In this document: positions 17,631-55,475 of the stretch, one piece after another | How positions within the stretch are numbered: position 1 is the first letter of the stretch | Layout: each line of letters starts with the position of its first letter | Origin: Octopus bimaculoides | Taxonomy: Eukaryota | Direction: 5' to 3' | Assembly (NCBI RefSeq): GCF_001194135.2 | Contig: NC_068984.1 | Coordinates: 132,396,355-132,452,760, forward strand | DNA: 56,406 nucleotides | Program-made: the position numbers and the translations under genes | Notes under the pieces: model-generated | What the model was told of the DNA's origin: nothing | Seen by the model: the letters and a program-made list of their open reading frames with translations, nothing else | The model's database searches: none

Positions 17631-18097
17631 AAACATCCTTCCACCACCACCACAAACCATCCTTCCACTACCACCACAAACCATCCTTCCACCACCATCA
17701 CAAACCATCCTTCCACCACCACCACAAACCATCCTTCCACCACCACCACAAACCATCCTTCCACTACCACCACNNNNNNNNNNNNNNNNNNNNNNNNNNN
17801 NNNNNNNNNNNNNNNNNNNNNNNNNNNNNNNNNNNNNNNNNNNNNNNNNNNNNNNNNNNNNNNNNNNNNNNNNNNNNNNNNNNNNNNNNNNNNNNNNNNN
17901 NNNNNNNNNNNNNNNNNNNNNNNNNACATCCTTCCACCACCACCACAAACCATCCTTCCACTACCACCACAAACCATCCTTCCACCACCATCACAAACCA
18001 TCCTTCCACCACCACCACAAACCATCCTTCCACCACCACCACAAAACATCCTTCCACCACCATCACAAAACATCCTTCCACCACCATCACAAAACAT
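17631..18097. repeat. 24-bp minisatellite (AAACCATCCTTCCACCACCACCAC)n spanning an N-gap
   Basis: Unit seen directly on both sides of the gap; explains the repetitive ORFs in both orientations. Confidence 0.95.
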
Positions 18098-30122: not shown

Positions 30123-30486
30123 TAGCATAAAAGGACTTTAACAGGAGAAGAAACAAGAATGCTTTTCATTCTGAACCACAGATTGTGGTCTAATAGAAAT
30201 TAAGCAAGTTACAACACTAACACTATTAACAGCAAAATAATAAAAATGACAATGATAATGTTTAAGTTTAGTAGAAAGAGACACAGAAGGGAAGTGGGAG
30301 TGTACAGTTGGTCTAATCAGTTCAAGTACTTCACTGGAATTTATCCTATCAACCCAGGCAGAATGAAAGAGGAAGTCAACTCTGGCAGTATAACCTCAGA
30401 ATGTAAAAAAGCCGTAACTAAATATCACAAGGTAATCAGTCAGACATCCTAACATTTCTGCTACTGAAATACAAATATATAATTAC

Positions 30487-31183
30487 CTGGAGATGATGGG
30501 GTACTGTCCCAAACTGAGGTGACATCAGTGAAAGATGAACAGTCAAATGATGTAGAAGATACAGGCAGACAAAATGATGCTGTAGAAATGGAGCCATTGC
30601 CATTTTTCATGAACTGTTCTTTTCTTGAATTTCTTGGAAGGCTATTTCCATTTCTAAACAAATGATCACAATGATTTGAAGTTTTTCTATCAAATTCTGT
30701 CTCACTGCTGTCCGTATGCAAGGAAATTTTTCTCTCTTTCTTCAGTTGCTCTGACTCAAAAGAGTCTTCTATAAAATGATTCTGATCTTTTTCAACCAAT
30801 TCTTCACCTCTATGTACTTCTTTGTCTCTTTCACTATTAGTTCCTTGTATATTGTAAAGTTCAGTGGTATTTACAGGTGTTTGATTATTTAGACACTGGT
30901 TCAAAGAATTTGATGTCTTTGAAGAACGCTTGTTAAAATTTCCAGGAATCGAATGGTTCTCTTGTTTAGTTAGAAGTTCAGGAGGTTTTGATTTATGTGG
31001 TTTAGAACTCAACTGGAATGGTTTACAACTTTCTTTCTTTGAAGAAAATTCAGGTAAGCACAACAAATTTCTTTTCCAAACAACATGAAGATTTCCATTG
31101 GGATGAATTTCCTGCATAATTTCCTCAAATTCTGTTCTTAGTTTTTTCATCCGATGTCGGACAACAAAACCACGAATATGAGC
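30487..31183 (-). CDS. IQCC: IQCC-like protein, exon 2 (second half of IQ motif plus low-complexity linker)
   Basis: cctatag|GCT...CCA G|gtaatt, 697 nt. AHIRGFVVRHRMKKLRTEFEEIMQEIHP resembles IQCC [28 protein letters not shown]. Confidence 0.92.
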
Positions 31184-33847: not shown

Positions 33848-33933
33848 TTTGGTAGCTTTTGGTAACCAAGAAAGCTAGCCAATCACAGGCCTCCTTTTAT
33901 CGTCAGTCGGCTCTTCATTCTAAGAAGATGGCG
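33848..33933. promoter_or_regulatory. Compact bidirectional promoter region between IQCC and Archease
   Basis: 80 bp between divergent ATGs. CCAAT box AGCCAATCA (33877-33885), CGTCA half-CRE (33901-33905), YY1-type AAGATGGCG over the Archease ATG (33925-33933); locally CpG-enriched. Confidence 0.7.
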
Positions 33934-33991
33934 AACAATTCTACCAACAATGATTTCCTGGACACGGAACTGCCTGTTATTAAATATGAAT
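33928..33991 (+). CDS. ZBTB8OS: Archease exon 1
   Basis: ATG in good context. MANNSTNNDFLDTELPVIKYE T|gtaatt (phase 1); KYE|Y matches the archease N-terminus. Confidence 0.88.
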
Positions 33992-35214
33992 GTAATTATT
34001 AGAAAATACATTTTCTTTGCTTTCAGTTATTTTGTCTTGATCGTTTATTAGCTCTGTATTTACTTGTTATCCTTCATACCATTTGTCTTTTCCTTGATGA
34101 TATAATAACCTGCTTTTGAAACCGTTTCAGCGCACTCATTGCGCAATCTTACATGTAAACAAAATGACTTGGAATCATTGTTTTGTTTTTGAGTGTGTTA
34201 ATATACACATCAGATAATGTAGAAATGGGTAAGCACCGTGTTTGGATGGGGCTACCATTGATGATTTTCGTCTTTTCGTTTCTTAACTAAGAAGTTATTA
34301 GTTGTAGAGAAAATGCGTAGTTTCGATTTAAAACAGTTTCTGTATAGCATGCTACACGATCAGACCGAAATTTAAAAGTAATAACTTTTAATCAGGTTCA
34401 AGGCAAAGTCCTTTGATATAGACTGCTGAATGGATAACAGCATTTTTTTTTTTCGATCTTTCTGTTTTAATAGTTACGATGAGAGAAAGGTACCCTCAGA
34501 CTGGAGATTCGATCCGGATACTTACAACATAGTGGACATCGCTAAAGACATCCGAAGGCCGGATTAAATCTGCCTTATTCATGAGATGATCTGGTGGTTG
34601 CTTCTAATAAAATGTAACAGATTTGGAAGAACTAGTCGTAATCTTTATTGGCTATAATCAGTTTGATAAAGCTCACAAAATAGAATAGATTTGAGGTAAA
34701 GAGAGAAGGATCTTTCGTGCATAATGTACTATATTGTTCTGGTGAAACTTGCTTAGCAGCTAAGTGAACTGGGCATTTGAGAGTTTCCCTGTTGACTTTA
34801 AAGACACTAGCTGGTGATCACTGACTTCTGAACTGATTGCCTGATACTGTAAACAGTCTATCCGCGTTCTCCATACATTCGTATATACACGGATAGAGGA
34901 TCCGATCCGGAACATCAGAATTCTCGTTCTCATCGTACTCAAATTTATTCCATTTTGTGGACTTATAACCGTAGATCTGGTTGTACGTGGCTAAGATACT
35001 ACCGGCATGTTGGTTATGATATAAGAGGTGCTTGTGGTAATCGTGAGATACTATTTACTTGAGTGGAGTTTCTCATAAGTGGCAGAAACTGTGAGGTTTG
35101 AAAAGGAGATAGACAAATGGCCATGTTTAATAAAAATTCAGTTGGTTTAAAATTTTTTAAATTTGTCAAACCCTAGTGAAGAAAGAAGAATTATACAGAT
35201 GCAAAATCTATTAA

Positions 35215-35493
35215 CCCATTACCTCCCATAATTCTATTAACTGGAATTTTTTTTTATGAAACTTTGATTTTTAGCATAAAACAGCCTTAGAAGCACGCTG
35301 GAATGATCAAAATAACATTTTAAATAGAAATAAGCGGGATATTGGGTGAAAAATTAGCAAACCTCATTTGAATATCAGAGAAATATTCCTAGTAGATATA
35401 GCAAAAAGGTTAGATATGTGTAAATATTGACAGATAATTACGAAATGTGTAATTTTTAAGTGATCTCATATGAGATCACTGGTAGGTAATGGG
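35215..35493. mobile_element. piggyBac-type MITE
   Basis: TTAA|CCCATTACCTCCC ... GGTAGGTAATGGG|TTAA (13-bp TIR, 1 mismatch, TTAA TSD); internal 20-bp palindrome at 35460-35479. Confidence 0.8.
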
Positions 35494-35835
35494 TTAATCT
35501 ATTTTGTTATCTCATTGATAAGGAGGTGGAAAGAAATTCAAGCATTTCACTGATACTTTTTTGGTGGTGGTGGGTGTCACTGCTGTTTGTCAGTTTGAGA
35601 ACCACTGTCTCAGAGAGGATTTACTCCCAGTGCCCTCCTGTATCTAACATACCCTCCCCCGAGTCATTCCCATACTATAGCCAGATGTCTTTCTTGTTGC
35701 CAAAACTTATCTGTTTCCAAGCAAGATAATATCTCCCTATAGCTAGATATGCTTTTGCAGAATATTGGAAATGAATGACATTAATTTACAACAAACATGC
35801 AATGTCAAGGTACATACATACATGCATACATATAT

Positions 35836-35923
35836 AATGATAAACTTCTGGAAAGTTTTATAGATTTTTGCATACATATGTATGTATGTAAAAATCTGTA
35901 AAACTTTCCAGAAGTTTATCATT
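35836..35923. repeat. Fold-back inverted repeat with 43-bp arms and a 2-nt loop
   Basis: AATGATAAACTTCTGGAAAGTTTT...CATACATA / TATGTATG...AAAACTTTCCAGAAGTTTATCATT. The two mismatches are G-U on the plus strand. Confidence 0.9.
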
Positions 35924-36158
35924 TAAATATATATGAGCATGTCTAGATATATAACTATATGCATGAGAATACATACATAAAGTAAAACATACAAATCTGC
36001 ACATATACATACATACATACAAACAAAAATACCCTGTTGTTGATGTTGAAATTCCAATGAAGGAGCCTTAAATCTAGGTTAGAAACCAGCTTTTACTCTG
36101 TTGGCAAGAAATCTCGAAATAAAACTGGACAATGACATACACATGTACATACATACAA

Positions 36159-36400
36159 CAGTCAGAACTCTTCTCTTACAAGACAATATCCCACAATGCA
36201 TTTGCAGTACCAGTGCTGATTCCAACATTCCGGATCCTTGACAGGTCTGTAGAGGAAACCCACTCCATAGACATTAAAACCTGCAAGATACTGACATCAA
36301 CTATTTCTGTGGAGATTTCCAGTTGGTGTCAGAATCTTGTAGGTTTTAACATAGAGGTTCAAATACACCATCGACAATACTGTCACGACCATCACTTACA
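36159..36400 (+). mobile_element. R4/Dong-like non-LTR RT fragment with fold-back, copy 1
   Basis: ISHNAFAVPVLIPTFRILD...IDIKTCKILT resembles the R4-clade AIN.FAVPVL.YSFGILDW...LD.KTRKIL region. Confidence 0.6.
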
Positions 36401-36744
36401 ACAGTCACTTCTGTCTCATCACTAACCATCTCTCCTCACATTCTTCTGCTAGCATTTTGTTGTGTTTGAAGACAGAACACTTTATTCTACATTGCCTCAC
36501 TTTACCTGAGATTGTACCATGAAACCAGAGCATCATCAACATTTTACTCTTACTTGTTTCAGTCATTTGACTGCAGCCATGCTGGAGCACTGCCTTTAGT
36601 CAAACAAATTGACCCCAGGACTTTTTCTTTGTAAGCCTAGTACTTATTCTATTGGTCTCTTTTGCCAAACCACTAAGTTACAGGGATGTGAGTATACCAA
36701 CATCGCTTGTCAAGCGATGGTGAGGGGACAAATACACACACACA

Positions 36745-36908
36745 CATCATCATCATCCATTTCACGTCTGCTTTCCATGCTGGCATGAGTTGGACGATTT
36801 GACTGAGGACTGGCGAACCAGATGGCTGCACCAGGCTCCAATCTGATCTGGCAGAGTTTCTACAGCTGGATGCCCTTCCTAACACAAACCACTCCAAGAG
36901 TGTAGTGA
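36745..36908 (-). mobile_element. SINE family A tail, minus orientation
   Basis: Reverse complement of the segment at 1-143. Confidence 0.85.
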
Positions 36909-37195
36909 GGGCCAGTCTTAAGCCCTTCACTCCCTGTGGGGCATTGGCCATCAACAGCTTTTTTCCACTGTTCATGACTCTTAAGCTGTCCTGTTCACTT
37001 GAAGACCTGTTGTGGCCGATGACAGTACCACCTGACCGGCTCCCATGCCGGAAGCACGTAAAAAGCACCATTCAAGCGTGGTTGATGCCAGTGCCGGCTG
37101 ACTGGTCTCATCTCATGCCAGTGGCACGTAAAAGGCACCATTCAAGCGTGGTCAATGCCAGTACTGCCTGACTGGCCCTCATGCTGGTGGTATGT

Positions 37196-37359
37196 AAAAA
37201 GCACCCCCTACACTCTTGGTGTGGTTAGCGCTAGGAAGGGCATCCAGCTGTAGAAACTTCACCAGATCAGATTAGAACCTGATTTGCCTGCCTTCAGTCA
37301 AACTGTCCAACCCATGCCAGCATGGAAAGTGGACGTTAAACAATGATGATGATGATGAT
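37196..37359 (+). mobile_element. SINE family A tail, plus orientation
   Basis: GGAAGGGCATCCAGCTGTAGAAAC...(GAT)n. Confidence 0.85.
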
Positions 37360-37898
37360 TATCTAGCCTGATACAAACTTTGATTTAATGAAGCTGTTGA
37401 CCTTGCCCTCAATAAGAACCAATGGCAAAAATCAGCTGGTCAGTAATGAGTGCACAATATCTCTTATGTTGTGCACTACCCCTTATGAAAATGTAATTAG
37501 GTGTTGAAAATAATATTGCTTTCAAATTTTGGCATTTGATTATATCGACCTCAGTACTCAACTGGTACTTAATTTATCAGCCCCGAGAGGATGAAAAGCA
37601 AAGTTGAACTCAGAACATACAGACAGATGAAATGCCACGAAGCATTTCATTTTCTACATTGGGCAGAATGCTTCACGGTTTTAGGCTATCTTTACATTCT
37701 AAGTTCAAATTCCCGCCAAGGTCAACTTTGCCTTTCATCCTTTCAGGACCAATATAATAAGTACCAGTTGAGTACTGGGGTCATTCCAAAGCTGTTAATA
37801 TGTTGGTATTAATGACATTAACAAACAATTTTAAAAACTATTTAATAAAAATCATTTTATATTTTTTAATTGTTATATAACTTTTTTTTTTTTCACAG

Positions 37899-37923
37899 AC
37901 TTGGACCATCCAGCTGATGTCCA
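37899..37923 (+). CDS. ZBTB8OS: Archease exon 2 (25-nt microexon)
   Basis: Long T-run, cacag|AC TTG GAC CAT CCA GCT GAT GTC CA|gtaagt = YLDHPADVQ. Confidence 0.93.
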
Positions 37924-38455
37924 GTAAGTTCCAACTCCTTTACCCCTTTTAATACCAGCCCATCCCAAACTGCCTATGATACAAGCTTTATAATTTTGAA
38001 CCTTTGCCTGTTCTGTGTATCATATGTGATACAAAGGACATAGTTTCTTAGTGTCCATGCTTTATGTATGATACACAATCATAATTTTATTTCAACCACT
38101 AAAGTAACTTGGAACTTATGAAAAGAAAGCCTTATATTACTCAGAATGTATGAAGCAAAGCCTAGCTAAAAACTTGAAAACAGTCATAGCCATTTAGGAG
38201 AAGCTTATGAAAATGCTTTGAATAGGAAGAGTTAAAGTGGTTGGTCTAAATTAAACCCTTCCATCAAAATTTCATATTTATTTATGTCATAAACACCAGC
38301 TTGATAATGACAAAGTTATTTTACTAAATTCTTCTTCATTTTGAAATGAAACAATGGCAGAAATATGGTAACAAAAGGGTTAATACATTCTTAGAAAGAT
38401 CCACAAGTACCTATTATATCAAGGATTCTAATTAACTGAAATATGATTTGTTTTC

Positions 38456-38770
38456 TAGTTGTAGTAACATAATTCACTGTATATCTAGTTGTTGTGAGAT
38501 AATTCACTTTAATCTGTACTTGTAGTAATATAATCCCCTGTATATGTAGTTGTAAGGACATAATCCTTCGTTTAGGTAGTTATAATGACATAATTCTGTG
38601 TATTTGAATCTGTATTGATATTATCTCTTATATCTAAAATGAACTCCTATACATTTTTTGTACAAGAGATTATGTAACTATGACTACATAATTTACATAG
38701 GTAATTGTAATGACGTTAAACTCTGTGCCTGAAAATGTAATGATATAATCTATGCATGCAGTTGTAACTC
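38456..38770. repeat. Degenerate ~30-bp minisatellite
   Basis: Successive units such as CTAGTTGTAGTAACATAATTCACTGTATAT and GTACTTGTAGTAATATAATCCCCTGTATAT. Confidence 0.65.
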
Positions 38771-39000
38771 CACAATCTGAATGGTGCTGATGATCCCAAG
38801 ATGAAAACAAGACATTTGTACTTAGAGCCAGAGCTGGTTTCAGCTGGGTTGGTAACGAAAGGTTAAGAAAAATGTCCAGTCATAGAAACCATATCAAAGC
38901 AAACACTGGAGAATAATCCAGTCCTTAGGCTCATCTAATCCTGTCAAACTGTCTCACGCATGCCAGCATGAAACATGGATATTGTTTTTGTTGTTGTTGT

Positions 39001-39032
<32 letters not shown>

Positions 39033-39289
39033 GTTCCCTGTACTTTGTAAGTGTAGTGACATAAACCCCTATATATTTCATTAGTTTTAGTGGCATTCTT
39101 TAACTTCAGGCATTTATAGGTGAAATATGCTTCCCCATGCCATGCAAGGAATTTTTTTTGTCTTCCATTGTCTTTGGTAGGTTTTCAATTTCATGTTGCT
39201 TATCTCTATTAGCAACATCAACAGAGTTGAGTGGTTTTCATCCCTTATTAGGATGTGAAAGTCTTCAAAACATAACATCTGACTTGATC

Positions 39290-39535
39290 TGGTATTCAGT
39301 ATGATAGCAAAGCATACTCTGCTTTTAGCAATAATAGTGGAGTTGGAGAGAATGTGTGTCCATAAGTCTACACTTTGGTCTTGTGTTCACATCCCATGTT
39401 TTGAGCTCTCATGAAAAACCTGGTGTATGTACCATGAAGACAACCTCAAAACTCCTTCATAGTCCAGGTTTCAGCTCCAATGAGAAGAATGCTCTCTGCA
39501 TAAACCCTAAAGAAGGACTTGGAAGTATTTGATTG
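39290..39535 (-). mobile_element. Decayed RTE-like LINE fragment
   Basis: Minus translation KSFFRVYAESILLIGAETWTMK...GTYTRFFMRAQN resembles RTE FFRA.VESVLLYG.ETWT...DG.YTR.LR; contains stops. Confidence 0.55.
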
Positions 39536-39919
39536 ACAGCAGTGGTGTATGGTGTTTGTTGTATTGGGTATGCTGCCACACCCAATGCCACCAAATTTCA
39601 ATCCATTAAGATTTGTGATTGAATTAATGAGTAAGGTTAATATTTATAATGAATTTGCCATTTTCGAGGGGTGTACAGCACACACCTAGCAACACCCAGA
39701 ATATACACCCCTAACTGACAGATGTTTTGAAGCTTGTTACAGATACTCCAAGTTTGTCCCTTGTGTTTCGGGAAGTCTTTCTTCTGACTGGCAATTAGTC
39801 CAATGTAGCTTCATTTTGTCTTGTTATTTCTTTGCGATAGCTGTGAACTTTAATTTGTTTCATTTCTGTTATTAATAATGATTTAAACCTTTTACTTTCG
39901 TCTTCTATTGTCTTTTCAG

Positions 39920-39930
39920 AATTCATGCCT
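39920..39930 (+). CDS. ZBTB8OS: Archease exon 3 (11-nt microexon)
   Basis: tcttttcag|A ATT CAT GCC T|gtatcc. Supplies the conserved Q-IHA-W residues; phase 2-1 exactly bridges exons 2 and 4. Confidence 0.9.
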
Positions 39931-39939
39931 GTATCCTTT
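39931..39939 (+). promoter_or_regulatory. U12-type 5' splice site
   Basis: GTATCCTTT matches the minor-spliceosome RTATCCTT consensus. Confidence 0.9.
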
Positions 39940-40521
39940 AAAATCTAATAAATATTTGAAGCTATGTTGTCACTGATCATCACTGTCACTATCATCACTA
40001 TCATCATCATCATCATATTCAATCCATTTCACTTATCATTGCATCCCATGAAATATAGTTTGCTGCTCAAGTTGCAATGATATCAATATTTTACATATTT
40101 GACATAAAGCCATGAATTTGAATAGGAAGGGAATCTTAGATTCAGTATATCCCCCAGTAGTTGATTAGTACTTTTATTGCCACGTGAAAGGATAGAAGAC
40201 TAAAGCAATGAGGCGAGGGTTTGAATGCAGAAAGCAGAAGGACTCAGTTAAACATCACAAAGCTAGCCTACAGTTGACTGCTTCTGCTATTCTGCTACTC
40301 TACAATCATCATCATCATCATCATTTTAATATCCACTTTTCCATGCTTGCATGCATTGAACAGATTTTATTGAGGTAGATTTACTACAGCCGGATGTCTT
40401 TCCTGTTGCCAACACTTATCTGTTTCCAAGCAAGGTAATATCTCCCTGTGGCCAGATATGTTTTTGCAGAATATTGGAAATGAATCACATTAATTTACAA
40501 CAATCATGCAATGCCAAGGCA

Positions 40522-40576
<55 letters not shown>

Positions 40577-40577
<1 letters not shown>

Positions 40578-40815
40578 AGTCAGAATTCTCCTCTTACAAC
40601 AAGGCAATATCCCATAATGCATTTTCAGTACCTGTGCTGATTCCAACATTTCGGATCCTTGACAGGTCTGTAGAGGAAACCCACTCCGTAGACATTAAAA
40701 CCTGCAAGATACTGACATCAACTATTTCTGTGGAGATTTCCAGTTGGTGTCAGAATTTTGTAGGTTTTAACATAGAGGTTCAAATGCACCATCGACAATA
40801 CTGTCATGACCATCG
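40577..40815 (+). mobile_element. R4/Dong-like non-LTR RT fragment with fold-back, copy 2
   Basis: SEFSSYNKAISHNAFSVPVLIPTF...; highly similar to 36159-36400, including the hairpin. Confidence 0.6.
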
Positions 40816-40852
40816 TGAACAATCATCACTCATGAGTCATCACCACTCATAT

Positions 40853-40861
40853 TTCCTTAAC
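40853..40861 (+). promoter_or_regulatory. U12-type branch point
   Basis: TTCCTTAAC ends 14 nt before the intron end (AG at 40874-40875); no long polypyrimidine tract. Confidence 0.9.
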
Positions 40862-40875
40862 TGACATCTCTCTAG

Positions 40876-40907
40876 GGGGCAACACACTTCAGGAGTCTTT
40901 TGAACAG
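40876..40907 (+). CDS. ZBTB8OS: Archease exon 4 (32 nt)
   Basis: ctag|GG GGC AAC ACA CTT CAG GAG TCT TTT GAA CAG|gtaaaa = WGNTLQESFEQ. Confidence 0.92.
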
Positions 40908-42262
40908 GTAAAAACCTTCCATTTTTCTATAAATCAATGATTTCTTAAAGCTTCAGATTTATATTCTAATTAAGTAAAATTGGATTTTGTGTCGTTCATA
41001 CATTTGCACAAAATTATGTATAAAACATGTGAATTAATGTCCAGTCAAGGATCAAAATACATTTGCAGATTTAGTTTGTTACAAGCAGATGTAGGTGAGT
41101 GATTAAGAAGCTTGCTTCCCATCCAGATGGTTCCGGGTTCAGTCCCACTGCGTGGCACCATGGGCAAGTGTCTTCTACTATAGCCTCAGGCTGACCAAAG
41201 CCTTGAGAGTGAATTTGGAAGATGGAAGTTAAAAGAAGCCCATTGTGTGTGTCTCTCTCTCTCTGTGCAGTGAGTGATAGTGGTAAACAATCGTACAGGC
41301 AATTTCATTCATTACCAATATTCTGCAAAAGCATCTGGCCATGGAAACTGGTGAGGGTTGGCCAATTGGAGGGCATAAAGGCATCCAGCTGTAGAATATC
41401 TGCTTCAATAAACTCCACTCAGCCCATGCAAGCATGGAAAAGAGAACATTAAAATGATGTTGTTGACATTACAACATCATGTGTTATGCTTTTCTCTTCT
41501 GAATGACATCCTGGATACGTAATGATGGCTAAGCCTAACTAAGCTTATTGAGTTGAGCTTATGGTACCGTGTAAGCCCAAATCCTAACACAGACATTTTA
41601 TTGTACATTAGGAAAATACATTATGCGAGCACAGAAAAGTGGAAGTTAAATGATGACAGCTATTATTATTATTGTTGTTGTTGTTGTTGTTAAGGCAGTA
41701 AGTTGGCTGAATCATTAGGGCGCTGGGTAAAGTGTTTAACATTTCATCCTTCTTTATAAATACCAGTCAAGTACTGGGGGTCAATGCAATCAACTAGCAT
41801 CCCACTCTCCCAAAATTTCAGGTTTTGTGCCTTTAGTAAAAAGGATCATTGTTGTTATCATCATCATCATCATGAAGGTGGTGAGCTGGCAGAATCATTA
41901 GCATGCTGGACAAAACACTTAGCAGTATTTCACCCATCACTACATTCTGAGTTCAAATTCTACCAAGGTCAACTTTGCCTTTTATCCTTTCTGGGTCAAA
42001 AAATTAAGTACCAGTCAAGTACTAGGGTTTATGTGATTGACTGTTCCCCTCCCCACTAAATCCAGGCCTTGTGCCTATAGTAGAAAGGATCATTATTATT
42101 ATTTCATTCATCTTTACGTTTTGAGTTCAAATTCTGCCGAGGTTGACTTTGCCCTTCATCCTTTCGGGGTTGATAAATTAAGCACCAGTGAAATACTGGG
42201 GTCAAAGTAATCGATTAGTCCCCTCCCCCAAAATTTCAGACCTTGTGCCTTTAATAAAAAGG

Positions 42263-42287
42263 ATTATTATTATTGTTATTATTATTA

Positions 42288-42331
<44 letters not shown>
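42263..42331. repeat. (ATT)n microsatellite, tail of a family B SINE just upstream of the exon 5 acceptor
   Basis: Direct repeat visible in the sequence. Confidence 0.9.
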
Positions 42332-42333
<2 letters not shown>

Positions 42334-42359
42334 AGTGTTTTTCTTTGTTTCTGTTGCAG

Positions 42360-42438
42360 GCGGCCATGGCAATGTTTGCTTACATGACAAATATAGAAAC
42401 AGTTGATATGATGGAAAGACAAGAAATTAAAGCTACTG
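42360..42438 (+). CDS. ZBTB8OS: Archease exon 5
   Basis: ttgcag|GCG...ACT G|gtaggt = AAMAMFAYMTNIETVDMMERQEIKAT. Confidence 0.93.
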
Positions 42439-42879
42439 GTAGGTAGCAGACACATTGTTCTTCTCTTGTATTTGTTTTAAGGCTGTGATGAGCGTCAAGT
42501 GTTTGACTTTCAACTCAAAGTTATTGAAATAAAAGTAATGAGATGGAAATAGTGATTGAAATGCAATGTAGTAAAGAAGAGATAAAAAAAAAAGAAACTG
42601 TTCGAAGGCACAAGCACTTACACTCACATGTACACATACGGCGATAACTTCCGCCTATCAAACTCAATTACAAGGCTTCAGTCAGCCCAAGGCTATAGCA
42701 GAAGACCCTTGCCCAAGGTGCCATGCTGTGGGACTGAACCTGAAACTAGCTTCCTAACCACACAACCTTGGTATATTCTTTTATTGCTTTTAAGACCTTC
42801 CACTTTTCAGATTTACATAGTCTCTCTAGAACTACATCACTCAATGTGCCTTTTTTGTCTTCATGATTGAACCAAATTC

Positions 42880-43338
42880 GATGACTGGCACTTGTGCCAG
42901 TGGAGCACTAAGAGCACCGTCCAAGCATGATCATTGCCAGAGCAGCTGTCTGGCTTCCGTGCCTGTAGCACGTAAATAGCACCATTTGAGCGTGATCGTT
43001 ACCAGCGTCGCCTTACTGGCACTTGTGCTGGTGGCATGTGAAAAAACATTTGAGTGAGGTTGTTGCCAGTGCCACTGGACTGGCTCTTGTGCAGGTAGCA
43101 TGTAAAAAACACCATTTTGAGCGTGTCCATTGCCAGTACCGCCTGACTGGCCCTCGTGCCGGTGACACATAAAAGCACCTACTACACTCTCGGAGTGGTT
43201 GGCGTTAGGAAGAGCATCCAGCTGTAGAAACTCTGCCAAATCAGATTGGAGCCTGGTGTAGCCATCCAGTTCACCAGTCCTCAGTCAAATCGTCCAACCC
43301 ATGCTAGCATGGAAAGCGGACGTTAAACGATGATGATT
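42880..43338 (+). mobile_element. SINE family A long variant (tandem GGCAC..GTAAAA modules plus tail)
   Basis: Modular body homologous to 29710-29918 and, inverted, to 47946-48470. Confidence 0.8.
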
Positions 43339-43699
43339 AATNNNNNNNNNNNNNNNNNNNNNNNNNNNNNNNNNNNAGCCATCCAGTTCACCAGTCCTCA
43401 GTCAAATCGTCCAACCCCTGCTAGCATGGAAAGCGGACGTTAAACGATGATGATGATGATGATATATATATATATATATCCAGCTGTAGAAACTCTGCCA
43501 GATCTGGTTGGAGCCTGGTGTAGCCATCCAGTTCACCAGTCCTCAGTCAAATCGTCCAACCCATGCTAGCATGGAAAGCGGACGTTAAACGATGATGATT
43601 AATTTCAGCTATTAGATTGAAGTCTTGCTTGGGTACTACTTCCAAGACTATAGTATAATCAGTTACGTCAAACCCAGTATCTGACTGCAGTTATTGTTC

Positions 43700-43955
43700 T
43701 GATTCATGGCTCACTTCCTGCACTTGTGATGTTTCATCAACCAAGAGGTGGTGGAAGCTTCAATGAAGGAGTTCTTCACCTCGAAAGACGGACAAGAGCT
43801 GGTATCATCATGGAATCAAAAACTGGCCTAAACATGGCTTCAAACAGTGCAACATGATGACCTCTACTTTGAATACTAGACTGCTTTTGTTCTAACGTCA
43901 CGAATAAAGCAAATAAGTTACCAAAATATTGCAGAACTTTTGACTCAACACAATA
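43700..43955 (+). mobile_element. Mariner transposase C-terminal fragment with 3' TIR remnant
   Basis: MAHFLHL*CFINQEVVEASMKEFFTSKD...TWLQTVQHDDLYFEY* (with stop and frameshift), followed by GCAGAACTTTTGACTCAACACAATA. Confidence 0.7.
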
Positions 43956-45801
43956 CTAAACTTAGAAAGGATGATGAATGGGAAAATCAGTGAATTCAAA
44001 ATGCAACAGGATGTAACTAAATACCACTAAAATGACTATTAGTCTGGCACATTACTGACTCTACCATCTGCTATCACTTGTATGGCTATAAATCATACTG
44101 GATTGGTTAACAAACTTCTGTGCTGCACCTTATAATAGTATCTTCTTTACCAGAATTACTTAGAACCCTAAATTTTGCCAGTGCTTGTGATTATTTTATA
44201 GCCCTAAGTCAATCCTGGTTAAGCAGACCTGTGATAAAAACATTCAAGCTATGACCATCGTGTTTTTGTTTCAGGAATAGTGTATCTTGGATTGTATCGT
44301 TCAGTGTGTCCTTTTTTTTTAAGACAGTAGAATGCTATTTTATTATTATTTCTTTTTTGTAAGTTATTGATTTAAGGTAGATTTCACTGCTATTTCTAGG
44401 TAAAACAGTCACACTGAGATCCCTCTGTGTTTGTTTGGCACAAGGAATGATAGCAATAATATTTCTAATATGGGCACAGGGCTACAAAGGGACCATTTTT
44501 TACCATAATTTTAATGAAATTTACTGTCCTACGTGTCTCAGTTAGTTTTGAAAATAATCAAAAATTTGGAGAGATTTAATAAAATAACATTTTTTTTTTT
44601 TTATTAAGTTTATGTCTGGATTGTAAAAAAAGGTGAACATACAAACAACAGAAAATTAAAGCTGAAGGTTCATCATCATCATCATTATCATCATCATCAT
44701 CGTTTAACGTCCGTTTTCCATGCTAGCATGGGTTGGATGGTTCAACCGGGGTCTGGGAAACCAGGAGGCTGCACCAGGCTCCAGTCTGATAACGCCAACC
44801 ACTTTGTGAGTGTAGTGGGTGCTTTTTACGTGCCACCGGGACAGAGGCCAGAGGAGGCTGGAAACGGCCACGATCAGTTGGTGCTTTTTTACGTGCCACC
44901 AGCATGGAAGCCAGTCAAAGCAGCGCTGGCATCGGCCACGTTCGGATGATGCTTTTTACGTGCCACCGGCACGGGTATCACAACTACAATTTCCATTTGA
45001 TTTTGATGTTGATGTACTTGACTCAGTAGGTCTCCTCAAGTACAGCAGGTTGCCCTATGATCCAAGGTACTTTTGAATGGGCTGGGGCTGGTTATGCGAA
45101 ACTGGTGTAGGATACAATCATGAACTCACTTTATTTGCTGGGTCTTCGCAGTCACAGCATATCTCCAGAGGTCTCAGTCTTTTGTTACTAACAATGAGAT
45201 AAAGTGCTGCTCGTATCATATTCTCCATTTTGTCTTTTTAGATGCCAATATTAATCATTCTTTCACTCAGCCATTTGACTCTGACCATGTAAGTTCGCAT
45301 AAAGCTTCCTCAGTAACTTGAAGAAGTTAACCAATATAAATATTTGGATTGACAGAATCACTCAACAAAAACAAATATAATAAAAAAAAAGAAAGATAAT
45401 ATTTACGATACCTTTTTCTACAAGCCAGGGGTTGGTTGAATTTATCAATTTAAACATTTCTATTCTCCGGTCAGTTTTACAACAGGACCAAACACTTTGA
45501 ATATATAATTATTCTTTTCTACTATAGCCACAAGGCCCGAAATTTTTGGGGAGGGGTCCAGTCAATTAGATCGCTCCCAGTACGCAACTGGTACTTAATT
45601 TATCGACCCCGAAAGGATGAAAGGCAAAGTCGACCTCGGCGGAATTTGAATATATAATTATTATTGGAGTTGTACTTAATTTCTTCAGCTGGGTATTACG
45701 ATGAGTTATCTCCCTTGTAATCATTTTTATGCATGAAGTCTAGCATACAGGTTGAAGTACATTTCTTCTCACCAAACTTCATTTCCAATTCCTGATAACT
45801 A

Positions 45802-45997
45802 TCGTATTTGACGGCGTATATAATACGCACACTTTTTTAAAATATATGTTTCAAAAATTAACCCTGGTCCTGTATGCGAATTTGAGCCTATATTACATGC
45901 AATAATGCATTAAAACCCCACTTTTCTCCTGAATATGCGTTGCTGAAATTGAGGTGCATCTAATGTGTCTGTGCGTCTTTTATGCCATTAAAGTCGG
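45802..45997. mobile_element. Degenerate Tc1/pogo-type MITE
   Basis: TA|TCGTATTTGACGGCGTATATAATACGCAC ... GTGCGTCTTTTATGCCATTAAAGTCGG|TA imperfect TIRs. Confidence 0.6.
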
Positions 45998-46183
45998 TAA
46001 CTCTTCATTTCAGGTTCATTATTTAGTTTGTAGTAGTAATAGTAGTAGTAGTAGTAGAGTTATTAGTGCAGAACAGAGCCTCCTCCCATGACTAACTTAT
46101 AAAAATTAAAGTTTTTATCAGCCACAAAGTATAAACTTTGTGTGTGTGTATAAGTATGTTTATAACTTTGATTTTTGTTTCAG

Positions 46184-46266
46184 GTGATGATTTGCTGTCG
46201 CTCTTGTTTCATTTCTTGGACGAATTCTTATTCCTATTCTGTGCTGAACCTTTCTTTATAGTGCGA
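46184..46266 (+). CDS. ZBTB8OS: Archease exon 6
   Basis: tttcag|GT GAT GAT...CGA|gtaagt = GDDLLSLLFHFLDEFLFLFCAEPFFIVR. Confidence 0.95.
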
Positions 46267-47491
46267 GTAAGTAGAATGCTTGTTTTTAATTGTTTATTTG
46301 TTTCTTTTTTTAATCTCTGTCTGGACTAAGGATTGTGATAAAGAAGAGATATTTATGCAGTTTGAATTTAATTAATGCCATTGTTGTTATCTTTCTCCTC
46401 ATTAAAACTTTTGATGCATTTATTGTCATTATCATAACAACTGTAAGTCACATGGGTTTATCAAACAACCCACATTCATCCTAGCCAGGAATTATTTAAT
46501 ATAATAAAAGAGCCATGACGAGAAAAGCAAGGAGACAGAAACACGCACACACACACACACACATATATGTATGACAGGCTTCCTTTCAGTTTCCATCTAC
46601 CAAATCCACTCACAAGACTGATTGATCTGGGGCAGTAGTAGAAGACACTCCCCCAAGATGCCATGTAGTGGGATTGAATCCAGAACCATGTGGTTGGGAA
46701 GCAAGCTTCGTAGCACACAGTTACATAGTTCCAGTCCCACTGCAAGCATCTTAAGGTGTCATTAATGACTGTGAAGCCAGTTTCTCAACCAAACATCTAT
46801 GCCCTGTTGTTATTACTATCCCTGCCCCTCTTCATGCCTACACCTGTCCATGCTTTAATACAGTAAAAGAGCCATGACAAGAAAAGGAGGCATAGGTCCA
46901 TCAGGAATGGTGTTGATGAATTTTGGGAAGTATGGCAGTTATGAGAGATTCACTGTTCTGATGCTAACAAACGGCATGGGTAGTTTATTCCATGCTTCAA
47001 CAGTTCAGATCTTGAAAATATGTTTCAAAAGTCATGGATGCTGCACTAAATTTTTGATTTTATAAGCATGTACAGAAACAGTTAAGATATTGAATTCAAA
47101 ATTGGCATGTCAGACAAAATGCTTGGTGGCATTTCTTCTGGCACTTTACATTCTGAGTTCAAATGACACCAAGGTCAACTTTGCCTTTCACCCCTTCAGG
47201 GTCAGTCAATAAAATGGAATTCTAGTCAAGTACTGGGATGAATATAATCATCTTATCTCTTCCCCTCAGAATTGCTGGCCTTAAACCCTGCAACAGACTG
47301 GCATCCCATTTAGGGGTGATGTTGTGATCTCAGTTACTTATAAGTCACAGAAGCTGGGTAACTGATCTTATGAATCCTAAGGCTCAAGAAAAAAAAGAAA
47401 AAAGAAAAAAAATTAGTCACTACTTCAACCACTAAAACTTTCAAATTTTAACTGAATACTGATTTTCTCTCTAACTTTTAATCTCTTGCAG

Positions 47492-47544
47492 AAAGTGAAA
47501 ATATTAGAATTTGATTTAGAAAATTTTATTATACATGCAGAAGG
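47492..47544 (+). CDS. ZBTB8OS: Archease exon 7
   Basis: cttgcag|AAA GTG...GAA GG|gtaagt = KVKILEFDLENFIIHAEG. Confidence 0.92.
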
Positions 47545-47945
47545 GTAAGTTAACTTTTCACAGCTCAGATTTTACAATCATTTTATAACTTGCTATTGAA
47601 TAAAACCATAAATCTGGTTTTTATCAGTTCTGTAGGTCTATGTGTAAAAGTGCTATGGGTCACAGCTAAAGACCTTTGTTACTGACAACTCTCTCTATAA
47701 TCAATTTCACACTTTGACAAACTTCACTATATATGAAACCCATTACTCTAACATACCTTATACTAATGAAAAATTCAGACAATACTAAACTTCACATGAT
47801 GATAAATCACATACTATAAAGACCTTTTTGCTATAACAAACATAGTATTTCAATAAACCTCTCAGATCAGGTATGGGGACATGTACCATTGCAGTGTATC
47901 ACTGCATCCACCATTTATCAGTATTTGTTCACATTCTATAGCAAT

Positions 47946-48470
47946 TCATCGTCGTTTAACGTCCGCTTTCCATGCTAGCATGGGTTGGACAATTTGACTG
48001 AGGACTGGTGGACCAGGAGGCGACACCAGGCTCCAATCTGATTTGGCAGAGTTTCTACAGCTGGATGCCCTTCCTAACGCCAACCACTCCGAGAGTGTAG
48101 TGGGTGCTTTTATGTGCCACCGGCACGAAGGCCAGTCAGGCAGTACTGGCGACGGCCACACTTGAAATGGTGTATTTTACGTACCACCTGCACAGGAGCC
48201 AGGCCATCGGCACTGGCAGCGATCTCGCTCGAATGTCTTACTGGCAACAGCCACGCTCAAAATGGTGTATTTTACGTGCTACATGCACAGGAGCCAGTNN
48301 NNNNNNNNGTATTTTACGTGCTACATGCACAGGAGCCAGTCCATCGGCACTGGCAACGATCTCGCTCGAATGTCTTTTCACATGCCACTGGCACAAGTGC
48401 CAGGAAAGCGACGTTGGTAACGATCACGCTGTTGCTATTTACACAATGATTGTGCTCGGACGGTGCTCCA
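47946..48470 (-). mobile_element. SINE family A long variant, minus orientation
   Basis: Reverse complement of the 42880-43338 modules; interrupted by a 10-N gap. Confidence 0.8.
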
Positions 48471-48638
48471 CACTATGGTATATCTTGCAATAAAAACATT
48501 ACACTATAGTAAATTCATACTCTATTGACTGTCTCCCTAACAAAACTTTATCAATCATTGCTACTCATTTCAATATAATGTGTTTTTTAGATATGAATTT
48601 ATAATGTTTTCCTCGTGTTTCTTTTTATATTATTGCAG

Positions 48639-48675
48639 GTATGGTGAAGAATTTGATCTTGATAAGCATCCTCAG
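48639..48675 (+). CDS. ZBTB8OS: Archease exon 8
   Basis: ttgcag|G TAT GGT GAA GAA...CCT CAG|gtaagt = YGEEFDLDKHPQ. Confidence 0.94.
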
Positions 48676-48810
48676 GTAAGTGATGAGGTGAAAGAAAGAC
48701 AATGAGTTGAATGTGAAGCAACAAAATTTAGGGGTACTACTGCTTGTTTAGGTAAACTGAGTGTAATGTAGAGCTATTGTTGTTGAACTCTAGGTCAATA
48801 TTGATCAAAT

Positions 48811-49137
48811 GGAGCACTCTCCATTGGTTACGACGACGTGGGTCCCAGCTGATCCGATCAATGGAACAGCTTGCTCGTGAAATTTACTTGCAAGTGACTG
48901 AGCAATCCACAGGCACGTGTACCCCTAATGTAGTTCTCAGGGAGATTCAGCGTGACACAGAGTATGACAGGGCCGGCCCTTTGAAATACAGGTACTACTC
49001 ATTTTTGCCAGCTGAGTGGACTGAAGCAATGTGAAATAAAGTGTCTTGCTCAAGGACACAGTGCGTCGCCGGGAATTGAACTCACGACCTTATGATCGTG
49101 AGCCAAATGCCCTATCCACTAAGCCATGCACCTTCAC
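48811..49137 (-). mobile_element. Full-length tRNA-derived SINE family C with 11-bp TSD
   Basis: ATTGATCAAAT at 48800-48810 and 49138-49148; tRNA-like head at the right end. Confidence 0.9.
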
Positions 49138-49433
49138 ATTGATCAAATAGACTTATGATCAAAGCCATTTCAGTGTCCTTCATTTTCAATATGGCAGGGT
49201 AGAATTTGAGGGAGACTCGGCTCTTGTTTTTTGCCACAGGGGTAACTATGTAGTGGCTGCTTATTGTGGAGGTTGTTCTTTAGCTCCGTCTCAATCATTA
49301 TGCAGCAGACCTGTATTAAAAGAGATTCCAGCCATGACTTCCCTTCCTTTTGTTTTTAAACCAGAATTACATTATCTCGTGGGCCCTATTTAACTCAGTA
49401 GGGTCCAAAATGTGGGAGATATGGCTGTTATTT

Positions 49434-49800
49434 TTAGGAGGTTGAGTGACTGATTAGAGGTAGTCTGGACATGTGGATGATAGCCAGAATAGTATGGGTA
49501 TCTGAAGGTAGTGAATGGTGGTAGTTTAAGTAGTAGTAAATGAAGATGGTATGGCTACATGAGGATAGTGAATGGTTGGTCCTGATGGTATGGACATATA
49601 ATAATAGTTGATGGTAGCTACTGCAGTAGAAGGTCATGATGGTATAGTCATGTGATAGTTCTGGATGGTAACTAAAATTGTGGTAGGGCATGGCTATGTT
49701 GTAGTGGTGTTGGTGGTGGTTGTGGTGGTTCTAGTTGTAGTAGTGGTAGTAGCGATGGTAGCAATACTGATGCTTGTAGTAGTGGTGATAGTGGTACTTC
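49434..49800. repeat. Decayed (GTA/GTG/GGT)n low-complexity tract
   Basis: Trinucleotide-like GT-rich sequence producing spurious poly-V/poly-T ORFs. Confidence 0.75.
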
Positions 49801-50219
49801 TACATGTGTGTGTGTGTATACACTCATGTAAACCAGTTAGTATTGTTTCATGCCCACGCTTTTGATGGTTAGGCAGGCAAGTCTCATGCGTCACCCTAGT
49901 GTGAAGAATGACAATTCTCCAATTCTAGTGTGGAGAATGACAAGAAAAGGATAATATGACAAGGCAAAGAATACTACAAGGTGTGAATGGTCATCCATCA
50001 TGCCTTCAAATGGAGCAAGGCCCATTAAGATTTTTGTTTCTGGTATTGCTAAGTCTTTACTCAACTTCTATATCCAATTACATCTCTCAGACATACCATC
50101 CTTGCCTTTCATATGAGTCAAGAAAACCCAGGTGAGAAATAAGTGCAAGGATCATCCATGGATCCATGGTGCTTTAAACCAATCCCGGTTGTGATTATTA
50201 TCATCACTTTTCACATTGC

Positions 50220-50279
<60 letters not shown>

Positions 50280-50668
50280 AAGGCGAGTAACCATGTAGCT
50301 TCTCTACAAGAACATGCTTTCCCCTCCTTAACCCTTATCTCCTCACATAAATTCAGTTCCTACCACCACCACCTGTTTGGATTTTGTGGTCCCACGAGCT
50401 GTGTAGCATCCTCTCTAATGCTGGTGGCACGATAAAAGGCACCCAGTACACACTGTAAAGTGGTTGCCATTAGAAAGAGCATCAAGCTGTAGAAACCATG
50501 CCAAAGTAGACACTGGAGCACAATGCAGTCCTTGGAGCCCTCAGATCTATTCAACCTGTCCAGCCCATGCCAGTATGACACACAGATATTAAATTATGAT
50601 GATGATGTTATTCTATTCATAGTTGATTTTTTTTATGACTAATTGTTTTTTTTTCTTGACCTTTGCAG

Positions 50669-50758
50669 GGAACTGAAGTAAAAGCCATCACCTATTCCAA
50701 CATGCAAGTTCATGACAAAAAAGAAGATAATGATATATTTGTAATAATTGATATTTAA
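50669..50758 (+). CDS. ZBTB8OS: Archease exon 9 (terminal)
   Basis: tttgcag|GGA ACT GAA GTA AAA GCC ATC ACC TAT...ATT GAT ATT TAA = GTEVKAITYSNMQV...FVIIDI*. Total CDS 474 nt (157 aa). Confidence 0.96.
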   Translation, partial: GTEVKAITYSNMQVHDKKEDNDIFVIIDI

Positions 50759-50827: not shown

Positions 50828-51240
50828 ATACTCATAAATTTTTTTTCTAAAATCATGAATTCTAACTACATATGAAATTAAATATTTCATAAACTTTTCT
50901 TTCTGATTCACATTTCATTTATATTCTTTAACAATGTTATTAGATTTAAGNNNNNNNNNNNNNNNNNNNNNNNNNNNNNNNNNNNNNNNNNNNNNNNNNN
51001 NNNNNNNNNNNNNNNNNNNNNNNNNNNNNNNNNNNNNNNNNNNNNNNNNNNNNNNNNNNNNNNNNNNNNNNNNNNNNNNNNNNNNNNNNNNNNNNNNNNN
51101 NNNNNNNNNNNNNNNNNNNNNGATTGGAGCCTGATGTAGCCATCTGGTTTCACCAGTCCTCAGTCAAATCGTTCAACCCATGCTAGCATGGAAAGCGGAC
51201 GTTAAATGATAATGATGATGATGATGATGATGATGATGAT

Positions 51241-53489: not shown

Positions 53490-55475
53490 CTGTTCAAGTG
53501 CCAACGTTCCTATGATGTGAAGATCAATCCAACTAAGTGTGTATTCGGCTCTCCCAGCTTGGAATTCTTGGGGCATCTCATTGACGCCAACGGTATTCGT
53601 CCGCTTCCCTCTAAAGTGGAAGCCATCAAACGCCTGTTTCCTTAAAACAGCTCAGAAATTTTATTGATTTAATTAATTATTATCGTCGTTTCATTCCTAA
53701 ACGTGCGGAAAAATTGCTTCCTTTGACCAAGATCTTGAAAGATCAACGGAAAAAAGACTCCCCGATAACGCTGTCTCCTACAGCCATCCAAGCTTTTAAA
53801 TCTGACCTTGCTCAAGCACCCTTCCCCGCTATCCCTATTGCAAAATTGGCATTCACTGTCGATGCGCCATCATCCACCATTGCCGCAGTTTTAGAGCAAT
53901 CTGTCAACAGCCGAAGCCAGTCATTGACCTTCTTTTCTCGCCAGTTGAAAAATGCTGAACTGAGATACAGTGTGTTTGGTAAAGAACTCTTAGCAATTTA
54001 TCTAGTGCTGAAGTATTTCTCTCACCTTCTCGAAGGTAGAGATTTCACGATTTTCACCGACTACAAACCGTTAACGTTTGCTGTTTTGCCAAAACGGACC
54101 GGTACTCGCCCAGAGAAACACGGCATTTGGACTACATATCACAGTTCACTAGTGACATTCGCCACATCGCTGGCACTGACAACATCCCCGCCGACGCCTT
54201 ATCTCGCCTGCCTGTAGGTGCATTGTTGACTCCTGCTTCGATTGATTTGGTTTCTATGGCTACTGGCCAACCCTCCATGGACTCTCTACACGTCTCTTCA
54301 CCACAGTTTTCCTGCTGCAAGTTTGAACACCTGCTTCTGCGTTTTTCTGAAGGAACTATTCTCTGCAATGTTTCTACCGGATCACCGATACCCCTCGTAC
54401 CTGAACATCACCGTCGTACTGTTTTTGAAGCACTGCATTCACTGTCACACCCCGACATTGCGGCCACAGTAAAGCTTATCTCGGTCTGCTTTTTCTGGCC
54501 GAATATGCGTCGGTCTATTACTGCTTGGTCGGCGTTCCAAGGTGCATCGTCACGTGAGAGCACCTCTTGGGCACTTCCAGCCACGGGACACTAGGTTCCG
54601 TCACATACACATCGACCTGGTTGGTCCTCGGCCGGTCAGTTGCGGATTTACTTATATATTGACCTGCGTCGACCGATTCTCCAGATGGTCTGAAGCCATT
54701 CCTCTTGTGGACATTTCTGCGGAAACAGTCGCTATAGCATTCATCTCGAATGGATATCTCGCTTCGGAGTACATTCTACAATTACTACTGATCGTGGACG
54801 CCAATTTGAAGCCTGCCTGTTCCGTGAGCTTTCGAGATTGCTCGGCGTTCAGNNNNNNNNNNNNNNNNNNNNNNNNNNNNNNNNNNNNNNNNNNNNNNNN
54901 NNNNNNNNNNNNNNNNNNNNGTCAAGGAGGATTTAGGCTACTCCTCCGCTGAGCCCCTGTATGGCACCACCTTAGCACTTCCTGAATAAATGTTGACGCC
55001 TGTCGACTTACCGAATGCGAACCTCACATCTTACGTCACGCGACTCAGGTCATTCTTTGCTGACTTTCCACCAATGCTTCCTCGCAACCAGTCTATTTCT
55101 TCTACAGTACCTCCAGATATTTCTACTTGGACTCAGGTGTTTGTAAGAAATGATGCCGTCAAGGGACCGCTCACACCTCCCTACATTGGCCCCTATCGCG
55201 TTCTTAGAAGCACACCGAAACTGTTCACTGTGGACATTCACGGAAAAAAAGAGACTGTCTCTATCGACAGAGTAAAAAAAGTATTTTCCGAAACATTTAT
55301 GCCACTTGCTAATACACCCATCATTCCACAAACACTGCCACCCTCATTCCCACAAGCACCACCTCCAATCACCAAAAAACCATCTACACAAACGCATTCT
55401 TCACCTTACAGGACACGTTCTGGCAGATCGGTTCATCGGCTGAAGAAATTGTCTCAGACTAATTACATTTCTTAA
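53490..55475 (+). mobile_element. Decayed Ty3/Gypsy LTR retrotransposon pol (RT C-terminus, RNase H, integrase, GPY/F)
   Basis: KCVFGSPSLEFLGHLI, NYYRRFIP, FFSRQL...YSVFGKELLAIY, FTIFTDYKPL, GTDNIPADALSR, HIDLVGP, TCVDRFSRW, PPYIGPYRV. Domain order is RT-RH-IN; several frameshifts; one gap. Confidence 0.93.

Follow-up and report, generated by a model that had tools for sequence, protein, structure and literature searches.

Can an exon of only 11 nt, bounded upstream by an ordinary U2-type acceptor and downstream by a U12-type donor, be a genuine part of a conserved gene, and what would follow for the control of that gene? The question is raised by the Archease gene of Octopus bimaculoides, which lies in a stretch of 56,406 nt on contig NC_068984.1 (RefSeq assembly GCF_001194135.2, positions 132,396,355 to 132,452,760 of the forward strand), referred to here as the window. 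A first-pass annotation of the letters had described exon 3 of this gene as an 11-nt coding microexon followed by a textbook minor intron, and had proposed that the RTCB cofactor, and with it tRNA ligation and XBP1 splicing, would thereby come under minor-spliceosome control. Our analysis makes it very probable that intron 3 is a genuine constitutive GT-AG U12-type intron, located in the Trp codon of QIHA/WG (slashes mark exon junctions) directly after a constitutive 11-nt microexon with an ordinary U2-type acceptor. The arrangement would be ancestral to sponges and bilaterians and would have been removed by precise loss in several lineages, including vertebrates.

Splice signals of intron 3

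Intron 3 reads as a textbook GT-AG U12-type (minor-spliceosome) intron, and in this respect the earlier description was borne out in its length, its donor and the position of its branch motif; deep conservation, described below, adds to this. The signals on either side of the microexon and at the far end of the intron are as follows, in window coordinates.

39880-39919, + strand: 3' end of the U2-type intron 2, with 85% pyrimidine at -23 to -4 and a CAG acceptor directly before the microexon
39931-40875, + strand: intron 3, 945 nt, GT-AG, phase 1, Trp codon split as T/GG
39931-39939, + strand: U12-type 5' splice site GTATCCTTT, 9/9 match to the consensus (RTATCCTT(T))
40853-40861, + strand: U12-type branch-point sequence TTCCTTAAC, 9/9 match to the consensus (TTCCTTRAY)
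40874-40875, + strand: 3' splice-site AG, with no other AG between it and the branch motif

The sequence at 39910-39945 reads ...gtcttttcag/AATTCATGCCT/gtatcctttaaaatc... and that at 40848-40883 reads ...catatttccttaactgacatctctctag/GGGGCAAC... The hallmarks of U12-type introns are conservation of both the donor and the branch sequence, a short distance from branch to 3' splice site (optimum 11-13 nt) and the lack of a distinct pyrimidine tract (Turunen et al. 2013, PMC3584512). In intron 3, the stretch from the branch motif to the AG measures only 13 nt. On both strands of the window GTATCCTTT and TTCCTTAAC occur once each, where shuffled sequences are expected to yield 0.54 and 0.61 copies, respectively, and the relaxed donor [AG]TATCCTT has its single occurrence at intron 3. 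From the window counts, the chance of the two motifs falling where they do, at a single predefined exon end and no more than about 20 nt from a predefined acceptor, is of the order of 1e-9 to 1e-10 per intron. The only copy of TCCTTAAC elsewhere in the window, at 50325, was set aside as irrelevant, its nearest acceptor being 343 nt away.

The seven other introns of the gene have the donors GTAAGT, GTAAAA, GTAGGT or GTAATT, which match the U1-type consensus CAG/GTAAGT at 6-9 of 9 positions and the U12 donor at 3-5, as opposed to 4/9 and 9/9, respectively, for intron 3. The claim that all other introns found in the window look U2-type therefore holds for these seven, which are the ones that our analysis covered. 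Phase 1 is enriched among U12 introns, and intron 3 is in phase 1.

Could the major (U2-type) spliceosome nevertheless remove intron 3, the U12-like motifs being coincidental? Such an explanation would accommodate the GT-AG termini as well as the last 20 nt of the intron, which in octopus contain 75% pyrimidine, like the U2-type introns of the gene. It is, however, hard to reconcile with the fact that each motif has a single copy in 112,812 strand positions, exactly where it is expected, that the donor has so poor a match to the U1-type consensus, and that the donor score is 9/9 in six species, from sponge to echinoderm to mollusc, and at most 6/9 in other introns. Moreover, the orthologous introns outside the cephalopods have no pyrimidine tract, and we regard removal by the major spliceosome as highly improbable. 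The lack of a long polypyrimidine tract, noted in the earlier description, is only partly distinctive in octopus: the branch motif is close to the AG, but positions -23 to -4 are 75% pyrimidine in octopods and within the range of the U2-type introns of the gene (70-85%). The orthologous introns of Littorina, Antedon and Oscarella are clearly tract-poor (45-55% pyrimidine).

The microexon within the Archease gene

To define the gene, human archease (100% identical to the Homo sapiens archease entry P0121) was used as a tblastn query against the window. This yielded seven similarity blocks on the + strand between 40.8 and 50.8 kb, along with LDHPADVQ at 37901-37924, and the best exon matches between the octopus and human sequences were 64-70% identical. 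The model built by hand from these matches has the following exons.

33928-50758, + strand: Archease coding region, 9 coding exons, 157 aa
33928-33991, + strand: exon 1, 64 nt
37899-37923, + strand: exon 2, 25 nt, encoding (Y)LDHPADV(Q) with the conserved Asp motif
39920-39930, + strand: exon 3, the microexon AATTCATGCCT, 11 nt
40876-40907, + strand: exon 4, 32 nt, encoding (W)GNTLQESFEQ and followed by the U2-type donor GTAAAA
42360-42438, + strand: exon 5, 79 nt
46184-46266, + strand: exon 6, 83 nt
47492-47544, + strand: exon 7, 53 nt
48639-48675, + strand: exon 8, 37 nt
50669-50758, + strand: exon 9, 90 nt, stop included

The predicted product matches the Pfam family Archease (PF01951) with E=1.1e-43 over profile positions 1-136 of 136, which identifies the gene as a putative activator of the RTCB RNA ligase. 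The closest homologues found beyond cephalopods are at most 77% identical to the octopus protein. The N-terminal D-H-x-A-D motif of the family is present as DHPAD (codons 37906-37920). We considered whether the change from Thr to Pro is an oddity of octopods and rejected this, since DHPAD recurs in 23 of 240 homologues, spiders among them, next to 205 with DHTAD; the variant appears to be tolerated.

Exon 3 contributes the last base of a Gln codon, the codons for Ile-His-Ala and the first base of the Trp codon. For an exact placement, we used a protein-to-genome spliced aligner with a minimum exon length of 6 nt, an intron length between 40 nt and 60 kb, and GT/GC-AG or AT-AC as permitted intron termini. 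Exhaustive alignment of the 157-aa protein to positions 30001-52000 of the window returned six solutions, all with the same exons 1-8 and differing solely in trivial alternatives for the last codon. Hence there is no other source of Q-I-H-A-W between exon 2 and exon 4, and no different location for the IHA residues was found in this interval. Of the 240 homologues retrieved, 230 have the residues (I/L)H(A/S)WG, and an orthologous 11-nt exon was identified in five other species, where the encoded variants IHA, IHS, LHS and LHA reflect synonymous and conservative differences. Taken together, exon 3 is most simply read as a real 11-nt coding microexon at the coordinates given by the first-pass annotation, its inclusion in the mRNA being indicated by the conserved protein sequence and by public gene models.

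These results also bear on the suspicion that the gene model is wrong, in that the 11-nt exon is an annotation device, with IHA encoded elsewhere or nowhere, or that the locus is a pseudogene. Annotation errors are known to arise at microexons, and several mammalian archease predictions are garbled at exon 2. Yet a single exon chain encodes the protein, the frame is intact across a full-length Archease domain, and both the substitution pattern of the 11-nt exon in five other species and the prevalence of its residues among homologues speak against an artefact. A faulty model or a pseudogene is thus scarcely credible here, even less so than removal of intron 3 by the major spliceosome.

The first-pass annotation had anticipated that automatic annotation would probably mis-model the gene, and this turned out otherwise. 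Our model is identical over its full length (100%) to the public O. bimaculoides proteins XP_014778956.1 and UniRef100_A0A0L8GQS4 (A0A0L8GQS4), so the gene is already annotated correctly, microexon included, and the annotations of Octopus vulgaris, Argonauta, Littorina, Antedon and Oscarella contain the microexon as well. Errors in short exons do occur in the archease family, though not in octopus: in mammal and bird predictions (P0148, P0150, P0151, P0158, P0163 and P0219) the DHTADVQ encoded by exon 2 is replaced or garbled.

The predicted outcomes of mis-splicing agree with those proposed at the outset. Skipping of exon 3 shifts the frame (...VQGQHTSGVF*) with a stop after 8 codons, whereas joint skipping of exons 2 and 3 (36 nt) keeps the frame and deletes YLDHPADVQIHA, the Asp motif included. 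Retention of intron 3 gives ...IHACIL*, with a stop after three intron-encoded residues (C-I-L). Each outcome is therefore null or lacks the catalytic Asp motif.

Retention and loss of intron 3 among animals

We aligned the archease protein of each of 11 species, octopus and ten others with an annotated archease, to its own genomic locus; the sample includes neither a cnidarian nor an insect. The microexon and an intron starting with GTATCCTTT were found at the identical codon and phase in 6 of the 11 species, representing three phyla. Apart from O. bimaculoides these are the following.

Octopus vulgaris (cephalopod): intron 3 of 1627 nt, branch motif TTCCTTAAC, 15 nt to the 3' junction
Argonauta hians (cephalopod): intron 3 of 744 nt, branch motif TTCCTTCAC, 14 nt to the 3' junction
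Littorina saxatilis (gastropod): intron 3 of 2026 nt, branch motif ATCCTTAAC, 12 nt to the 3' junction
Antedon mediterranea (crinoid): intron 3 of 358 nt, branch motif AACTTAACC, 14 nt to the 3' junction
Oscarella lobularis (sponge): intron 3 of 164 nt, branch motif ATCCTTGAC, 13 nt to the 3' junction

In the remaining five species the intron is absent and the flanking exons are fused.

Lingula anatina: fused exon of 43 nt (11+32)
Owenia fusiformis: fused exon of 43 nt (11+32)
Daphnia pulex: fused exon of 58 nt, with a different downstream intron
Mouse: fused exon of 122 nt (11+32+79)
Mugil cephalus (teleost): fused exon of 122 nt (11+32+79)

Of the taxa suggested for comparison in the first-pass annotation, the molluscs sampled have the intron, as do a crinoid and a sponge, whereas it is missing in the annelid Owenia and in mouse and a teleost, along with Lingula and Daphnia. 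Among the 77 introns tabulated, the U12 donor score was 9/9 in the six orthologous introns and at most 6/9 in all others, and no species of the 11 had a U2-type intron at this position. Exon 2 measures 25 nt in 11/11 species, from sponge to mouse, and where the U12 intron is kept, exons 2-4 form a run of three very short exons (25, 11 and 32 nt). The ends of neighbouring introns vary freely among the species that keep intron 3. In Oscarella, the other seven Archease introns measure 49-59 nt.

The validated U12-type GT-AG introns of mammals provide close parallels. The donor GTATCCTTT of Smap1, Mapk14 and Phyh is identical to that of octopus, and the branch sequence ATTTCCTTAACG of mouse E2f3 is nearly identical to the octopus branch ATTTCCTTAACT (supplement of PMC6717393). 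The octopus intron also resembles them in its short distance from branch to 3' splice site, in being a lone minor intron among major ones and in having a position conserved over very long evolutionary distances. It differs in that its upstream exon is only 11 nt long and in that its host gene, Archease/ZBTB8OS, has no minor intron in vertebrates. Accordingly, ZBTB8OS is absent from human and mouse tables of minor-intron genes that list MAPK8 and E2F3 (supplement of PMC6717393), and since the intron is missing in mouse and the teleost, vertebrate ZBTB8OS would be free of dependence on the minor spliceosome. We found no literature linking ZBTB8OS/Archease to minor introns in a search that extended to publications and not to bulk intronIC or MIDB tables, and none among the papers listed, judged by title or abstract, on a microexon bounded by a U12 donor. 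Molluscs are reported to be relatively rich in minor introns, with Octopus sinensis serving as a representative species (PMC10639083). Intron 3 would probably be flagged already wherever intronIC or MIDB has been applied genome-wide to octopus annotations.

As a microexon, exon 3 resembles the ancient constitutive coding class in being at most 30 nt long, in having strong flanking splice signals and in being constant in length and position across phyla, and its skipping would destroy the frame. Neuronal microexons differ from it, since the length of exon 3 is not a multiple of three and its donor is of the U12 type rather than the U1 type. Because of this length, exon 3 could not serve as a regulated in-frame cassette of the neuronal kind.

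Comparisons within cephalopods allowed us to look for conserved sequence beyond the splice signals. The introns of O. bimaculoides and O. vulgaris are 85-90% identical throughout, which makes this pair uninformative on intronic elements. In the Octopus-Argonauta comparison, the region 37.5-42.6 kb aligns in three blocks only, 39908-39939, 40838-40935 and exon 5. The first of these comprises 12 nt of the acceptor, the microexon and exactly the nine donor bases, ending at 39939, and the second covers the branch site and exon 4 and extends into intron 4. Across phyla, no shared intronic sequence was found beyond the core signals. With nothing else aligned, there is no sign of a dedicated intronic enhancer.

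On the simplest reading, the series of exons of 25, 11 and 32 nt, with a U2 intron after the first and a U12 intron after the second, would have existed no later than in the last ancestor shared by sponges and bilaterians. It would have been followed by at least three losses through precise exon fusion, one on the way to vertebrates, one on the way to Daphnia and one or two among annelids and brachiopods, and the number and timing of these losses are rough because only 11 species were sampled. This roughness weighs against our account of intron 3, as do several other points. The candidate branch adenosines 40859 and 40860 are 15-16 nt from the 3' junction, slightly more than the stated optimum of 11-13 nt, and the pyrimidine content of the octopod intron falls within the range of the U2-type introns. 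A scan of the 56-kb window against Rfam gave zero matches, the octopus archease protein entries are themselves predictions, and the Octopus-Argonauta comparison revealed no extended conserved element pointing to a dedicated enhancer, although short degenerate elements would escape it.

Two further observations concern sequences resembling parts of this intron. About 460 nt of intron 3 (40382-40857, up to the U12 branch site) have an 88%-identical copy in intron 1 (35673-36436). In O. vulgaris the intron-1 copy (L001, about 2633-4252) keeps TTCCTTAAC, the AG and a 32-nt pseudo-exon 4 with the donor CAT/GTAAAA, while in O. bimaculoides the copy could not be aligned beyond about 36436. The pair has the look of an old duplication within the gene, by which a decoy U12-type 3' splice site was left upstream of exons 2-3. 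In Littorina (L003, 7738-7832), a 95-nt AT...AC gap (ATGACGCG...GTGAC; ATGACG...), placed as intron 5 by the alignment, was considered as a second minor intron and rejected, as it has no U12 motifs. The gap falls within a single 79-nt exon of other species and adjoins a repeated 'TRV' peptide, and it is probably an artefact of the annotation or of the aligner.

Recognition of the microexon and its consequences

How might an exon of this size be spliced? We favour a mechanism in which recognition of intron 3 is intron-defined and is combined with a strong upstream acceptor. A preformed U11/U12 di-small nuclear ribonucleoprotein (di-snRNP) would bind cooperatively to both the 5' splice site and the branch site over the 945-nt intron and would set a sharp downstream boundary of the microexon, independent of exon length. 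U6atac would then replace U11, and the first AG located 10-20 nt downstream would be used (PMC3584512). The upstream acceptor would rely on its strong pyrimidine tract (85%), and a cross-exon contact between U11-59K and U2AF may help it at very close range. Alternatively, the two flanking introns may be removed sequentially via an intermediate exon of 36 or 43 nt. Intron-defined recognition is favoured because it fits both the sponge gene, with introns of about 50 nt, and the octopus gene, with introns of kilobase size.

About 50 nt are classically thought to be needed in exon definition for the simultaneous occupancy of both exon ends. As 11 nt is far below this, either the close-range contact across the exon or the sequential removal of introns would be required, and ordered or assisted splicing of the 11-nt exon, as the first-pass annotation had proposed, is plausible. 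In mammals, exon bridging by U11-59K and U2AF and exon skipping with the minor spliceosome inhibited are both documented (PMC8034651; PMC8329584). The cross-exon systems (U11-59K/PDCD7 with U2AF; the U11 snRNP-binding splicing enhancer (USSE) of SNRNP48 and RNPC3) share with the octopus gene a U11 site downstream of a U2-type acceptor, so that binding of U11 could activate the upstream 3' splice site (PMC8034651; PMC8329584). They differ from it in spacing, the octopus acceptor and donor sites being only 11 nt apart; no distance limits for the activation of an upstream acceptor by U11 are given in PMC8329584 or in the related literature examined.

It is conceivable, if unlikely, that the 11-nt exon and the U12 donor form a functionally coupled unit, in which length-independent and highly specific recognition of the U12 5' splice site by the di-snRNP permits constitutive inclusion of an exon well under the size limit of exon definition between kilobase-sized introns. 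The intron would then be kept as U12-type or be deleted outright, and never be converted to U2-type. The counts match this expectation, with 0 conversions from U12 to U2 and losses in 5 species among the 11. If the unit were coupled in this way, the dosage of Archease in cephalopods would be sensitive to the activity of the minor spliceosome.

Since a failure to splice intron 3 would yield only truncated products, the output of functional octopus Archease is predicted to depend on the minor spliceosome. Whether this dependence has been selected as a regulatory valve, in which the U12 intron and microexon couple Archease dosage, RTCB-dependent tRNA ligation and XBP1 splicing to minor-spliceosome activity, is a different matter. 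Minor introns can be slowly spliced and rate-limiting (PMC3584512), every mis-splicing product of the gene is null or without the catalytic Asp motif, and the arrangement has been kept for hundreds of millions of years in several lineages. On the other hand, there are at least three clean losses among the 11 species, including vertebrates, in which the RTCB/XBP1 pathway has been characterised, and human and mouse inventories of minor-intron genes do not include ZBTB8OS. The lack of the intron in Daphnia, Owenia and Lingula also argues against an indispensable regulatory role. Conservation between Octopus and Argonauta is limited to the core signals, and according to a pan-eukaryotic survey neutral processes may explain much of minor-intron evolution (PMC10639083). 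We therefore consider a selected valve doubtful, to about the same degree as the coupled unit. The claim that RTCB, tRNA ligation and XBP1 splicing are under minor-spliceosome control is overstated; it would hold only trivially, as for any gene with a U12 intron, and only in the lineages that keep the intron.

The surroundings of the gene are as follows.

1115-2273, 8559-10199 and 11083-11910, + strand: large low-complexity open reading frames of another gene, located at 1-12 kb, with no Pfam match
30461-31150, - strand: open reading frame of 229 aa upstream of Archease, with no Pfam match
53714-55475, + strand: open reading frames with a match to RT_RNaseH (E=8e-20) and a weak one to the integrase core domain rve
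about 1560-1780, 8610-8850, 17750-17900 and 50940-51120, and other short runs: N runs (assembly gaps), visible as X runs in the translated open reading frames

The 229-aa frame may be an exon of a divergently transcribed neighbour, one that the annotations of O. vulgaris and Argonauta likewise place upstream of archease, and the segment at 53714-55475, downstream of Archease, is read from its domain matches as a pol fragment of a retroelement of the long terminal repeat (LTR) type. None of the assembly gaps interrupts the stretch from exon 2 to exon 4.

Archease intron 3 is a tidy but rather ordinary representative of an intron class already known. Taken alone, it discloses no new layer of control over tRNA ligation or the unfolded-protein response, and for vertebrates it is of no relevance. 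What it contributes is one more well-documented U12-type intron of ancestral metazoan origin, one that human-based catalogues cannot contain because vertebrates have lost it, at a locus where retention and precise loss are cleanly patterned among phyla. Its distinctive feature is the spacing of 11 nt from a U2-type acceptor to a U12-type donor, which would have been stable since the sponge-bilaterian ancestor or earlier; from sponge to octopus the architecture is the same even though the introns grew from about 50 nt to kilobases. This makes the Archease locus a convenient natural substrate for studying the cooperation of the two spliceosomes over an exon that falls short of conventional exon definition, as well as the order in which the flanking introns are removed.

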